A DNA stretch of 64,000 nucleotides from Oculina patagonica (taxonomy: Eukaryota), in NCBI RefSeq assembly GCF_052425735.1, contig NC_135763.1:37386001-37450000 (forward strand), in the 5' to 3' direction. A model generated the notes under the pieces. That model saw only the letters and a list, made by a program, of their open reading frames with translations. It was not told the DNA's origin and made no database searches. The stretch's first letter is position 1. The number at the start of each line of letters is the position of its first letter. Both the position numbers and the translations under genes were made by a program. Shown here piece by piece: positions 9,001-15,909 of the stretch.

Positions 9001-12000
9001 AAGAAAAAGGTGCATTCTTAACAAGCACAATATAAAATCATGGCACTATCAAATCTCTTCAAACTCGAACTACCAAATTATATGCCAATTTCACTAGGAG
9101 TTTTGTAGAAAATCATGGCATTAGCAAATATCCCAACATTCGTACAGCCCCAATTCCCCCTGCCCCTTAAAAAAACCTCTTAGAACTGGATAAAATCTGG
9201 AAGTGTTGACAACATCATCTTACGAGACCGCGCGCAGCTTTAGTCCAAGGAAATCTGGAGCTTTTCGTCTTCTCATTCTGCGATACAGTGCTCAAGAGCA
9301 TACCGTAAAAACCCGCAGATAAGCCGCACCTTTTTTCCAAAAATTTTCGCTCGAAAGCAGGGGTGCGGCTTATCTGCGGGAACATTCGGAAAAGGTGCCG
9401 TAAATTTTTGTTAACTGATGCTAATTTATGGAAAATTATGTAAATTAAAAAACCTAAAAACTACAAGAGAGTACCGGTCATTGCTTTTGCAAGTTTGACA
9501 GCTCCTATACTGTTGCAGTGTCGACAATAGCCTAAAACTTTAACAGTAATATTGATACTTTTACGAGCGAGAAAATACCACGAGTATTCACGAGTAAGAT
9601 GGCCAATTGTTTCTCTCTCATTTTGCACTTTGATGAAAAATTTGTCGAACTGATTACGAAACACTCATTATGCAACAAGTTTTTCTTCAATAGATGGCTC
9701 CCAAATCTCTTTAATTTGTCAATATGATCACCACGAAACTCGAACGCCTCCATCGCTATCTTGTTTTGCTTTACGTTCTCTCCCTAGTCCCATATTTCGA
9801 GTCCGATCAAATGCCTGGTTACTAAGCTACGAACGTTTTGCAAACGAAAGCTCTTGTTGTTGTCACACAAAAATCTATGGAAAACTGCGTTGAATGAAGA
9901 AATACCTGTCAACAAATGCCAGAAAAAGATCACCCATAAAATGTCAAAGTTGGTTTTCATTATATTAAAGAGCTCAAATTGTGGGTAAGACTGAAGTATT
10001 TTCTGTTTCAATGTTCATTGAGTTTACGTTTGATGAAGAAGACTTCCTAAAGACTCAACTTTGGATTTTTGACTCGACTTTGGATTTTCTTTGATTTACT
10101 TTCAAAAAACTTTTTTTTCCAACATTTGAGTTGTTAAACTCAGGGTGCGGCTTATCTGCGGGTGCGGCTTATACGCGGGTGTTTACGGTAATTTTAAAGC
10201 GACGAAAACGAAGCTGTGGCTTAGCTTTGCGGACTACATTCTTGAAAGCAGGGGAATTAATTTTAAATTTATTTTCCCCCTACAAATGTTTGATGTTATA
10301 TACAAATGCTTTCTGGTGTTTTGTTTTGTTTTTTGTTCGTTAATTATTATTACTTTAGCGCGGCTAATAAAAAAATACGATCTCCCCACATCACTTTAAT
10401 TGCCGAATCCTGCAGATTCAAAAAGTTATTTTTAGCGGGAGCAAGCGATTACATCTGTCAAGTGATGAGTTGTGACTGATGTTTTGCACTCCTCCTGCGA
10501 GCTTTTCCGAGCTTCAAATTGCAAGATCTGTCAACACGCCTATTGTTAACTATTGCGAAATCGGTGCACTGAATGTACCCATGGCCGACACTATCGCAGG
10601 TTGCTAAGGCATGCGGGTCCTCATGAAATACTTGCCAAATTTTCCAACCCAAAAAAATCCCGGAATCAAAAATTTCAAACCCAAAAACATCCTTCGATCA
10701 TCCCCGTCATTTACAAACTGGAGTACCCCCCCCCCCCTGGGGATTGATGCAACTCTGCTAGCAGGCTATCCAGGAACTTACCAAAGGTGTTTTAGAAGAA
10801 TTTAAAGATCTTAAATGACGATGAACGACTTCAGCTATAAAACAAAAAGAATATATTTTCCATTTTAACAATTAGTTAGAAGGAACAAAGATGAAGTCAG
10901 AAGAATAATGTTTGATATAACAATCATTTATAATTTGCAAACGATCATGGCAAATATTTAACCTAGCTTTTGAGAATTAGAATGCTTAATTTCATATTTT
11001 CCTTATCTTTGAATAACACAGCTACCTTGTTTCTTATCAGGTTTTTGAAATGCAAGCCCCATTTCAAGTTGTTCAATGCACCAGTTCAGCTCACTCTGAA
11101 ACTTGTCTTCTGCTGACTGTAAAATAATTAAAAACAACAAATTATAACAAGTTTTATACTGACTAAATTATAAATCACATCAGAGGTATTCTTGAAAAAA
11201 CTGTAGAAATTGTCCAGGTTTGATGGTTGAGGGTAATATTCGATGGTTGAGGGTAATATCCTGAAAAGGGTAAGCCATGAGCCATGCAGCCCACACTGCC
11301 AAAGCTTATTACAGTTTCCTTACCATTATGCGGCTAGGAATGGTTGTTACGTGTTACCCGTCTGCGTCGCTAGTATAAAGACGGGCACAAGGCAAGTTAC
11401 CTGTCTAGATGAGCTTCCTTTCGAGATGCGTCTCAAAGGACGGATAACAAAAGGAAGCTCTTTTGACGCGCAACGCATCTTGTGCCCGTCTTTATACTGG
11501 AGACGCATAACAAGACGAACAACAAATTTTTTGCTGAAGCTCGTCCAGACGAGTAACACGTCTCTAGTATAAAAACGACCAATATTTCCACATCCCCTTG
11601 AATGGGATGCTAATCCATTGTAGGGTACACCCCCAGCATGATGTTGCCGGTTTTCATAGTCCCCCAAAAAAGATTTCCATATAAAATAATCAAAAAACTT
11701 AAAATGTATTTAGCTGTACAGAATGAGATAAGCTATTTGGGGACACTATTAATCTAATCTAATCTAATCTAATTTAAATTAAGAAGCTAACAACTGTGAC
11801 GCCAAAATTATACATACAGTATCCGTTTTTACAAAATACTGAAATCTTGCCGGTAATCTTTTTACCTCACTTGTTTCTTCTGTTTTAGCTACGCCATCTT
11901 CACGTGTACTTTCTGCTGAAACCTGGACTGTCTCCTAAGAAATATGCAAAAATAGCATTTATTAAAAATGTTTACCAAGTATTTCAACGTAAATTCCAAA

Positions 12001-12110
12001 GACGGTACCTGAAGTTTCTGCTCCTGCTTTTTTCGCTTAGCAGCTTCCTTTTTCTTCTTGTTTTTCCGCTGTTTTGCCGTGAGTTCTTTCTCTGCTTCTC
12101 CATCCGCCAT
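6039..12110 (-). CDS. C8orf33: UPF0488 protein C8orf33 homolog (194 aa, 7 exons)
   Basis: Exons 12110-12009, 11934-11866, 11116-11026, 10834-10782, 7006-6925, 6597-6497 and 6125-6039; all GT-AG with consistent phases. Motifs FQSELNWCIEQLEMGL...KTPLPRKRQLMFSLFGDYRKKM and C-terminal FRFNF match the C8orf33 family. Confidence 0.92.
9303..10188. mobile_element. Tc1/mariner (pogo/Tigger-like) non-autonomous DNA transposon in a C8orf33 intron
   Basis: TIRs CCGTAAAAACCCGCAGATAAGCCGCACC and GGTGCGGCTTATACGCGGGTGTTTACGG, flanked by TA at 9301-9302 and 10189-10190. No intact transposase ORF. Confidence 0.85.
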
Positions 12111-12268
12111 TTTTGATCTTCTTTCCCAACTCATCCAATCAAATCAAAGAACATTGAAATTTTTCAACCAATGAGAACGCAAAGATGTAGCCAATCAAAT
12201 GTCTCGGAACTGCGCCAAATGCGCGCGTTACCGGAAATCCAACGGTTTGTTTACAAACAAACACTTCA
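12111..12268. promoter_or_regulatory. Compact bidirectional promoter (C8orf33 / SOCS-box gene)
   Basis: Only 158 bp separate the divergent ATGs. CCAAT boxes at 12136, 12168 and 12191, ETS-like CCGGAA at 12231, and a CGCGCG element. Confidence 0.75.
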
Positions 12269-13680
12269 ATGGCTTCCGTAATGGATGTCGAGATGCCCGC
12301 TCGCTATTTTTTCAGCGAAGCGTTTGATTTTTACCACGATTTTCACGGGGAATGTGAAGACTGCGGTAGAATAGTTCCAGAGTGGTCGTTGTTACAATGC
12401 CAATATGGCTTCTGTGGGAAATTTTTCTGTCAAAGCTGTGGATTTCGTTGTCGAAGATGTGGCGATCACGAAGCCCGCGCAGTTACAATTTGCTCGTCTC
12501 ACGCCAGTCTGGTTTATCCGCCTTGTGATGGATGCAAGAAACAATTCTGTGATGTCTGTTCCAAAATAAATGTAACTCAGGTATGTTTATACATGTAAAT
12601 ACGTCTATTTCATATGGTGACGTGGCGAATTATTTTTTTTTTAAAAAGATTGTACATAATTCTATAGTTTGTGTACATCGTCGTGAATAAATTTACCGGC
12701 TTTCTGGTTGTAAACAAAAGCGATGTTTGCGCGCCAAGATCGAGAACAGTTTTTTTTTTTATTTCGGATCAAATGGATAAACTCAGTAAAACACGTTTTA
12801 AAAACATTAATAATTAAAGACATCGATCGATCTTCAATTTTTTCATTTTCGCTTCGAATCAAGGTTGCCAAAATTAATTTATTATCGCGTAGAAGCTCAT
12901 CTGATTTGGTTTTAACTTCTTATTTCTACGGTAGAATTTATATACATCTATAGAACACCATACTCTAAATTTTAAAGAAATGATTGGAGATTTTTGGTGA
13001 TTACAGGTGTCACAATATGAAACAGACACCGCGGTACCGTTGTAAACAAAGCGTGTGGTGGGGGCCATTCCATTTTATATTCACCCCCCCCCCCCCCTGT
13101 TGACGACTGTTTTTGAAGGGGTTTTGAAAGTCATTTCTGAGGGGTAGCTCCGTCGGCGTTCTTTGATCTTTCAAATATTTCTGAAGGGGTTAAGGGTAAA
13201 GTTGGCTTTTTTCTGATGGGGTGAAGAAAAATCGGGTTTTTCTGAGGGGGGGATCATGTCGGCACTTTGATCTTTTCTTCTTAGGGGGTAATTTTTGACT
13301 TTCCTCGTCAACAGAGGGGTTTGGATATAAAATGGAATGGCCCTGGGAGGCCTAAGAGTGACCGGCTTTTTTACTCCTAGAAGAATACACTTTACATATT
13401 AACACTGTTTCTCTTGTTTTTGAAGTGCAAATCCTGTCTGAAGCATTTCTGTTCCAAATGCCAAGGTCAAGAAAATGGGAACATTGTCAAGAGTGGAACA
13501 TGTGACCAGTGCGACATTAAAGTACTCCGCACCCTGCAAGAGATTTGCCGCAGCAATATCAGGCACACAATCAGAGGAGCTTGTGGAACTGTTCGCATGC
13601 TACAGTCAAGGGACATTGATCAAAATGTTCAACACCTTCCAATCCCTGGTCCTGTAAAGAACTTTGTATGCTATAAATAA
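12269..13680 (+). CDS. Cys-rich (CxxC-repeat) protein with a C-terminal SOCS box, 188 aa, 2 exons
   Basis: Exon 12269-12580 (CAG|GTATGT) joins exon 13426-13680 (TTTTTGAAG|TGC) in phase 0. About ten Cys/His pairs are followed by LRTLQEICRSNIRHTI...VQHLPIPGPVKNFVCYK* (BC box plus LPxP Cul5 box). Confidence 0.85.
13062..13343. mobile_element. MITE with GGGCCATTCC termini (PIF/Harbinger-like, tentative)
   Basis: TIR GGGCCATTCCATTTTATAT / ATATAAAATGGAATGGCCC with TGG on both flanks. A related terminus lies at about 58357-58380. Confidence 0.75.
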
Positions 13681-15909
13681 GTTTGACCCTCCCCCCTCCC
13701 CCCGCCCTTTGGTTGGAAGGGAGAAAATGGAAGATTGAATTGAATCGAGAAACATTCCCAGAAGCATTATTGCTAATTTAGAAGGATAAATGTTTTAAGG
13801 TGAAAATATTTTCTGCTATACATAGATTTCTTTAATTTTTATGTATATAAAAGTGAAAGTTGTAGTTGAGAAATTTACTATTGTGTTGTATGAATTAAAC
13901 ATAAACATAAATACCGGTATTTTAACTTCAATAATTTATTGAAGATAGCTTAAAAGATGTAAGTTGCTTTAAATGTTAAACATAAATATGTAGAATTAGA
14001 GTAAAATTACCCAGTTAATTTAATATATTAATTAATTTAACGAAGACAAGATTTTTATTTATCACTGGTCCAAAGAATAGGTGGTTTACTTTTGCAAAGC
14101 GTGTTGCAATTTGGCAAGGTATGTACCGTGCAAGGAAATGCACACCTTTCTCTCTTGCTTAATCATGCTTTGCACCAATTCACAAGGTGCTTCACAAAAA
14201 TAAACCACCTGATCTGCAGGCTATACTTTTGGGGTTTTTAGTTCCTTTCCTCTGGCTGTGGAAAAGGGCCAAGCAATGTATATATTCACCAACAAACTTG
14301 AGAGGAGTTTGATGTTAGATTGTTGTAGAACAATACATGTATACAGAGAAATAATGTTCCAATAAAAATAAAGTTTGTAACTGCATCAGCTAACTGTATA
14401 TATTTACAAAACAATCATACATTTTTATCCTTATATTTTTTTTTTTTCCTCTCTTCCTAAAGTAAAACTAACAGACCACAACTCTGCACTAAACCAAATA
14501 AACAACTTACATCTGAAATGTTACTAAAACCTAGGTTTCCCATGGGAGTATCCTGTGATGCGCAAAGTGTCATCCTCAGAGACCAAGGGGCAGTTAGTGG
14601 GTTAGTAGAGGCAAGGGAAAGTCTAAAAAGGCGAAAAAAAAAAAAATCAGCAAAAAAAAATTTCAAGAACAAAAAGAGGAGCTCCTTGCCTAGACTTGCA
14701 CCAAGTCGCCCTGACTTTGAGAAAGTCTACTCCTTGCCCCATTCTTGACTTTTCTTTGCCAATTTTTTTTGCCCGATAGACTTTCCCTCACCCCAATAAT
14801 TCTCCCTGGGTCACCACACTAACAAAAGGTGTCACAATCCTTTATCCACCGTTTTTGCGCACAAGGTATTGTGGGTAAATGTACCAGCTGCCATCTGTTT
14901 TGGTATGGTGGAATATTTAAAGCACAGACCCATTTTACACTTATACCTCCCTTGGGAGATAAATCAGCTTTAACTAATAATTTGAACAAAATTAATGACA
15001 AAAAAGCAACCACAATACAATTTTATTGTGCACATTTTTAAATTATTTTTCCTTACATGGCTGTAAAATAAAGTCAATTTAAAAATTAACTAAGGTTATC
15101 ATCTTTTTACATTTGTGTATTAAAATACATTCTCTGGATAAAACTATTATCAATTTTCATTAAATCTACATTAATCTACTCTAGTTTTAAAAACTAAAAA
15201 TCGGGAAAATTTTGTTAAAATGACAGAAAATTTGTTATCAGAGTTTTCATTAACACAACTCACCCCTTGTAAAAACACCTACATTTATGTGAAGTGCATG
15301 TTACTTTCTAGGAATTATTGCCTAACACTGTCTGTAGAATGTGGTCTCTTTTCCTAACTTTTCTATGGTACAAGAAAGCAAGGAAAAAAAGAGGGGCAAG
15401 CACTACTCACGAGAATCACAAAAAATTCTTTTCATTTTTTCTAAAGATTTGTGTAAAAATTCATAATTATTAACAAGTTTTTGCTGCCAGATTGGATCTG
15501 ATTAATTAAGGGACTGCTCGAGATCTATTGAAGCTAAGAGAATGAATAAAGAAAAATTAACTTGGTCCCCCACTTCCTCACTGAACAGGACTTGTCATCG
15601 GATATAAAAATCATAGAAATGTAGAACATCTAAGTTGTTAAATTTCTCTATGGGAGAATATTGACATTTTGTATAAAAGACGTATGTTTCTCCTGACACG
15701 AAAAGGTCTTTTACTTGCATGACATGCTTATCAAGTTTGTAATTATTAAAATAAGTTAAAACAGACCAGAAATAAATCACTATTGTGACAATGAATTAAA
15801 AACTAAAGTTAAATAAAAATTTATGTGAAATTTCCTTAAAATCTTTTAAAAATTTATAGATTTATTAATTTTGTGCTAAATTTATTTGAACTACTAAAAA
15901 TTTTTATGT

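Follow-up and report, generated by a model that had tools for sequence, protein, structure and literature searches.

Gene organization and genomic context

The 64,000-nucleotide window of the Oculina patagonica genome analyzed here contains a small two-exon gene, the zinc-SOCS gene. Exon 1 (12269..12580, + strand) carries the start codon and residues 1–104 (104 codons), which span an unstructured N terminus, a first putative zinc module, and the first part of a second. It ends in ACTCAG and is followed by GTATGT, the beginning of an 845-nt GT..AG intron in phase 0 (12581..13425, + strand) that terminates in TTGAAG at position 13425. Exon 2 (13426..13680, + strand) encodes residues 105–188 (84 codons) with the last three cysteine pairs and the SOCS box, and closes with TAA. 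The spliced product of both exons has 188 amino acids, among them 22 cysteines and 7 histidines, and its phase-0 join agrees with the two-exon model that the first-pass annotation had put forward.

We aligned public sequencing runs to positions 11900–14100 and searched them for evidence of the junction. A 499-nt contig from run X1 and a 2082-nt contig from run X2 skip the 845 intron bases. The joint in these contigs was called at 12578->13424; shifting the cut by +2 to the GT..AG boundaries places it exactly at 12580/13426, the junction that had been proposed. Runs X1 and X2 are designated RNA by guess only, but an intron-less contig with canonical GT..AG ends is an mRNA-type product and is hard to account for otherwise. 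Runs X19 and X22 read through the intron and thus behave as DNA. The O. patagonica zinc-SOCS gene is a real, spliced, and expressed small coral gene.

Exon 1 is 82% identical to its counterpart in Pocillopora P0010, and the intron lies at the same position in the divergent homologue L005. Among the coding differences listed relative to closely related corals, 7 of 10 are synonymous, a count that is indicative only. A stronger argument for constraint is the invariant set of putative zinc ligands and the BC box at an overall identity of ∼30%.

The intron also harbors a MITE-like, high-copy repeat of ∼282 bp (13062..13343) that lies outside the protein. Its 28-nt terminal inverted repeats are 89% complementary, and it contains short internal TTTCTGA(A/G)GGGG repeats. 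In the DNA-like runs, its word depth amounts to thousands, compared with ∼100 in the flanks.

Upstream of the zinc-SOCS gene, in a head-to-head arrangement, lies a DUF4615/UPF0488 (C8orf33-like) gene (11006–12134, − strand). Its first exon (12008..12134, − strand) is followed by a minus-strand intron (11934–12007), a downstream exon matches PF15393 (E 1.6e-7), and the gene starts ∼130 bp away from the start codon of the zinc-SOCS gene. The two genes probably share this ∼130-bp region as a bidirectional promoter. A DUF4615 exon is likewise found head-to-head upstream of the homologue in L005 (1995–2090, − strand). That the same pairing occurs in L005 and in Oculina argues for orthology and suggests a conserved bidirectional promoter pair. 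The 2082-nt contig of run X2 (a Logan contig) spans both genes.

The C-terminal SOCS box

When the exon-2 product was compared with Pfam, residues 139–185 (13528..13668, + strand) matched the SOCS_box family PF07525 (E 5.6e-5) over profile positions 3–38 of 39. The score of 23.7 bits exceeds the gathering score of 23.5 by just 0.2 bits and is marginal taken alone. The gathering score is also passed in 6 of 10 relatives scanned, with 27.5 bits for Pocillopora P0010, 28.5 for P0015, 26.2 for P0037, 26.7 for Porites P0039, and 29.6 for Actinostola P0019/P0026. Three relatives remain under the cut-off (18.2–22.4 bits), and the divergent relative P0025 gives no SOCS_box match. The SOCS box of L005 scores 21.2 bits.

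Both functional elements of a SOCS box can be located in the sequence. The BC box TLQEICRSNI (residues 140–149; 13531..13560, + strand) follows the consensus [STP]-L-x3-[CSA]-x3-hydrophobic. The Cul5 box VQHLPIPGPVKNFV (residues 172–185; 13627..13668, + strand), placed by motif and alignment, contains LPIP at residues 175–178, nine residues short of the C terminus. In ten aligned C termini, the invariant positions are the BC-box leucine and cysteine, the leucine and first proline of LP-Φ-P, and one arginine, one isoleucine, and one valine. The LP-Φ-P site reads LPIP in Oculina and LPLP in other corals and anemones; LPII and LPKT are found in the two members that diverge most. This motif is needed for Cul5 binding and selectivity (PMC4812663), and Cul5 selectivity may therefore not extend to the whole family. 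On these sequence criteria, the C-terminal part is a genuine, canonical SOCS box, as the first-pass annotation had claimed.

In an AF2 model of full-length P0037, the nearest orthologue, this region forms helices 141–157, 163–177, and 183–187 at moderate confidence (mean pLDDT 64). Comparison of a profile of the SOCS half with the PDB returned PCMTD1, SOCS3, and SOCS1 at E 0.4–0.9. At 188 amino acids, the Oculina protein falls 4 short of the 192 found in other coral orthologues, and the difference lies in the linker between BC box and Cul5 box. In this linker (residues ∼154–162; 13573–13600), Oculina also has an extra cysteine, with RGACGT in place of the RGAIG of the others.

Predicted docking to Elongin C

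When searched for Skp1_POZ, the Oculina genome yielded Skp1 (L006) and the first exon of Elongin C (L007). With the latter we retrieved a full-length Elongin C from Acropora cervicornis (P0075, 123 amino acids), which served as partner for complex prediction with the 84-residue product of Oculina exon 2. The predicted complex has a median ipSAE of 0.74, compared with 0.00 for the best of three controls; the three runs share at least 85% of contacts, and the pLDDT of the partner is at least 62. Of 78 solved complexes, 51 attain the mark set for this score, as do 2 of 108 mismatched pairs.

The contacts of lowest predicted error are provided by the BC-box residues Leu-141, Cys-145, and Ile-149 (residues 37, 41, and 45 of the modeled piece). 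Further contacts are predicted for the Cul5-box helix (Leu-175 to Ile-177, Val-181, Phe-184, and Val-185). All of them fall on the C-terminal helices of Elongin C, the canonical BC-box pocket. Many SOCS-box/Elongin C structures have been solved, and the complex score may reflect the memory of the model for these; it speaks for likeness, not binding. As for the cullin, CUL5 has been reported in Nematostella, that is, in Cnidaria (PMC2785787).

The predicted N-terminal zinc array

The N-terminal ∼110 residues, with the array proper at residues ∼29–133, contain ten Cys/His pairs that are kept in relatives of only ∼30–40% identity. All pairs named in the first-pass annotation are found (CEDC, CQYGFC, FCQSC, CRRC, CSSH, CDGC, FCDVC, CKSC, FCSKC, and CDQC). 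Its statement that the unit C-x2-C-x3-F-C-x2-C occurs about three times is also fair, because the unit is exact at residues 86 and 105 and recurs in looser form as C44-x4-C49-x3-F-C54-x2-C57.

The pairs are organized in two modules. The first (Cys-29 to Cys-64; 12353..12460, + strand) comprises four cysteine pairs in a predicted cross-brace. The second is divided by the intron: its first part (Cys-75 to Gln-104; 12491..12580, + strand) holds Cys-75/His-78, Cys-86/Cys-89, and Cys-94/Cys-97, and its second part (Cys-105 to Cys-133; 13426..13512, + strand) holds Cys-105/Cys-108, Cys-113/Cys-116, and Cys-130/Cys-133. Across 13 sequences, none of the twelve cysteines at the fourteen exon-1 ligand positions varies, and the seven full-length proteins likewise share all six ligand cysteines of exon 2. 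In 4 of the 5 divergent sequences of the alignment, His-78 gives way to cysteine, as would be expected for a metal ligand. Apart from this exchange, all 20 proposed zinc-ligand positions are conserved across the family. Ten Cys/His pairs imply five zinc ions, and the array is accordingly predicted to bind about five. Taken together with the SOCS_box match at E 5.6e-5, the family-wide conservation of 20 proposed ligands excludes chance.

We folded residues 22–137 of P0037 alone with a cleaned alignment, which gave an AF2 model with a pLDDT of 82.9 and a pTM of 0.64. In an exhaustive VIA-align search with model residues 1–70, ranks 1–14 are all FYVE or FYVE-related Rab-effector fingers (Z 3.6–5.4). 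The best match is RIM (2cjs_C; Z 5.4, rmsd 2.6 over 53 residues), and the others include ZFYVE19, RUFY, melanophilin, Slp4, Hrs, CARP2, EEA1, endofin, rabphilin, ALFY, and Rubicon. Model residues 55–116 match PHD fingers at Z 2–3.1. These matches are consistent with one another but weak; because Z values below 8 may reflect just a common arrangement, the best value of 5.4 is to be read with this caution. The first module is thus predicted to be FYVE-like, without the lipid-binding motifs, and the second to be PHD/B-box-like.

Simple tandem repetition, as envisaged in the first-pass annotation, is not borne out. Profile–profile comparison of the two halves (hhalign) yielded a non-significant E of 0.09 over 16 columns, and we rejected an internal duplication of the two zinc modules. 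The model instead suggests two different cross-brace zinc modules in a new domain combination, which most likely form a protein-binding surface.

The likeness of module 1 to the FYVE-type fingers of RIM, rabphilin, melanophilin, ZFYVE19, and EEA1 lies in its eight cysteines in four pairs, its modeled cross-brace, and a stretch C-G-x-x-F-C-x-x-C that resembles the FYVE core. In contrast to FYVE domains, its second pair is spaced C-x4-C, and Z reaches only 3.6–5.4. The FYVE signatures WxxD, (R/K)(R/K)HHCR, and RVC are absent from the sequence, and Pfam returns no FYVE match. We therefore do not place the protein among FYVE domains and confine the relationship to fold likeness.

The proximity of module 1 to FYVE-type fingers (Z up to 5.4), together with weak sequence echoes of SBP, CXXC, and AN1 families, could also mean that the array is directed at a non-protein ligand, such as a membrane lipid, a nucleic acid, or ubiquitin, and localizes the ligase to a compartment. 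We regard this as improbable, since the PI3P signatures WxxD, RRHHCR, and RVC are lacking, the SBP/CXXC/AN1 echoes are all non-significant, and the best structural match, the Rab/Munc13-binding RIM finger, is a protein–protein module.

The first-pass annotation further suggested that the array might sense metal or redox state. In such a receptor, substrate binding or the stability of the receptor itself would depend on how far the array is loaded with zinc or its cysteines are oxidized. The sole support is composition, 22 cysteines in 188 residues, whereas the regular ligand pairs model as compact cross-brace fingers like the structural zinc of FYVE and PHD domains. Both the invariance of the ligand pattern and the compactness of the cross-brace model speak for structural zinc, and we consider a sensing role very unlikely.

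Relationship to known domain families

The exon-1 product matches no Pfam family, even at E up to 10. Domains listed ahead of SOCS boxes are SH2, ankyrin, SPRY, WD40, LRR, and GTPase domains (PMC4812663), none of which has a Pfam match in the Oculina protein (E up to 10) or its relatives (E up to 1). The pairing of a Cys-rich part with a SOCS box is indeed unfamiliar, as previously supposed, with no usual pre-SOCS domain and no Pfam family at threshold ahead of the box. Our literature searches on the SOCS box combined with Cnidaria, Nematostella, coral, or zinc finger found no description of the architecture.

Searches for structural relatives gave a similar picture. A full-family profile compared with the PDB returned only non-significant echoes of SBP, CXXC, eL40, and CARP2 (E at least 0.011). 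With Foldseek, no PDB structure reached E ≤1e-3, whether the query was the full-length model (pLDDT 64) or the N-terminal model (pLDDT 83); for the latter, the top rows, none at E ≤1e-3, are tandem PHD, LIM, and FYVE. Among AFDB clusters, the matches, to RING, B-box, and AN1, are all weak (TM ∼0.2). The ESM Atlas gave no usable match when searched by features, and only prokaryotic and viral multi-zinc-ribbon proteins (TM ∼0.5) when searched by shape.

A sequence-based candidate is the ANCHR-like B-box (PF22586), which gives sub-threshold matches (E 0.006–0.08) in seven family members, at CxxC pairs spaced by 7 and 4 residues in turn, a position that corresponds to the second part of zinc module 2 (Cys-105 to Cys-133). 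The family reaches 13.4–17.1 bits against a cut-off of 27. PF22586 matches more than 135 places in the Oculina genome with up to 41 bits, and the zinc-SOCS locus is not among them. With true B-box genes of the same genome scoring up to 41 bits and this locus absent, we rejected membership and leave the array outside the B-box family. Many of the PF22586 matches lie in tandem clusters of open frames of 700–800 amino acids (C12:9.33–9.44 Mb, C5:26.36–26.39 Mb, C11:6.45–6.69 Mb, and C2:23.13–23.15 Mb), an indication that B-box (TRIM-like) genes have undergone large, lineage-specific expansions in this coral genome.

With the known SOCS-box Cullin-5 receptors (SOCS/CIS, ASB, SPSB, WSB, Rab40, and others), the coral protein has in common the ∼45-residue C-terminal box with a BC box of the type [STP]LxxxCxxxΦ and an LP-Φ-P motif, the PF07525 match above threshold, and the predicted docking to Elongin C through the leucine and cysteine of the BC box. 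It differs from them in its predicted five-zinc, Cys-rich array, which belongs to no Pfam family, in its length of just 188 amino acids, and in that all named members are anthozoan.

Family and distribution

The Oculina genome has a single copy of the gene; no paralogues were found, and the only other match has an E of 0.76. We gathered relatives by word-indexed and profile searches. Full-length orthologues of 188–196 amino acids occur in Pocillopora verrucosa, Acropora digitifera, Porites harrisoni, and Montipora capricornis (the Montipora record being partial), and the anemone Actinostola has proteins of 181 amino acids. The NCBI orthologue records are all labeled uncharacterized or hypothetical. 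Most coral annotations nevertheless already contain an orthologue, so the concern that annotation could miss the gene does not hold generally. The literature yielded no mention of the LOC identifiers of the orthologues or of the sample accessions.

The RefSeq model of the orthologue in Actinia tenebrosa (P0013, LOC116291426) has 109 amino acids and ends nine residues past the exon-1 homologue. It lacks the last cysteine pairs and the SOCS box, both of which are present in the Actinostola orthologue, and is probably mis-annotated or represents an alternative 3′ end.

An exhaustive HMMER search with exon 1 against 1.84 billion representative proteins returned 15 sequences at E ≤0.001, 14 of which look like members of the family. 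The remaining one (P0021, 399 amino acids, E 5e-7) is rich in repetitive CxxC; we set it aside as a compositional match that appears to lie outside the family. A divergent group (P0020 and P0022–P0025) is ∼35–40% identical; these sequences and P0043 derive from samples ERR6349712 and ERZ25066852. For one member of the divergent group (locus L005), we also found a second exon with the last cysteine pairs and a SOCS box. The family is probably restricted to Anthozoa, as seen for the named members, which belong to Scleractinia and Actiniaria.

Proposed function

We favor the reading that the protein is a substrate receptor of the Cullin-5 ligase (CRL5) and represents a new class with a five-zinc, FYVE/PHD-like array. 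On balance this appears likely to us, with binding to Elongin C and Cul5 (in silico), zinc binding, and the receptor role as the parts that we infer. Within the Elongin BC dimer, Elongin C would accommodate the BC box, and the LPIP-containing Cul5 box would select Cullin-5/Rbx2. The zinc array would recruit a protein partner, to be ubiquitinated by Elongin BC–Cul5–Rbx2.

A protein of this kind could also bind Elongin BC without being a receptor, either by titrating Elongin BC or Cul5, in the manner of a small competitor or regulator, or by using the SOCS box to set its own stability. The very small size of 188 amino acids would fit such a role, as would the failure of structure searches to recognize a substrate-binding fold and the degenerate Cul5 box of the divergent members in which the BC box is kept. 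Nevertheless, the zinc array is conserved as strongly as the SOCS box, which argues for a specific binding function, and the characterized SOCS-box classes listed in PMC4812663 all act as receptors. We therefore judge a purely regulatory role to be unlikely, although less so than a non-protein ligand of the array.

Of the lineage-restricted CRL5 adaptor suggested in the first-pass annotation, the SOCS box, the predicted docking to Elongin C, and the anthozoan-only distribution of named members stand, and the metal- or redox-responsive arm is unsupported. Since named members come from Anthozoa only, the protein is best read as a candidate CRL5 receptor that is lineage-restricted and has a new substrate arm.

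A bolder reading is that the five-zinc array is regulated, not merely structural, so that zinc loading or cysteine oxidation would gate substrate capture by an anthozoan-specific CRL5 receptor. We give it very little credence. Metal or oxidative stress is central to coral bleaching, and a regulated array, if true, would tie such stress directly to targeted protein degradation.

The SOCS box itself is already recognized as a mobile module and would act here by the standard mechanism. The family would form a new SOCS-box subfamily. It leaves thinking on how SOCS boxes work unchanged, and its importance is accordingly moderate. SOCS-box receptors are defined by the domain ahead of the box, and to the field's catalogue, which is without a zinc-finger class, the family would add one. 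It also offers a compact new zinc domain. Small, single-copy, and conserved in stony corals and sea anemones, the family would provide an entry to the CRL5 biology of early-branching animals.
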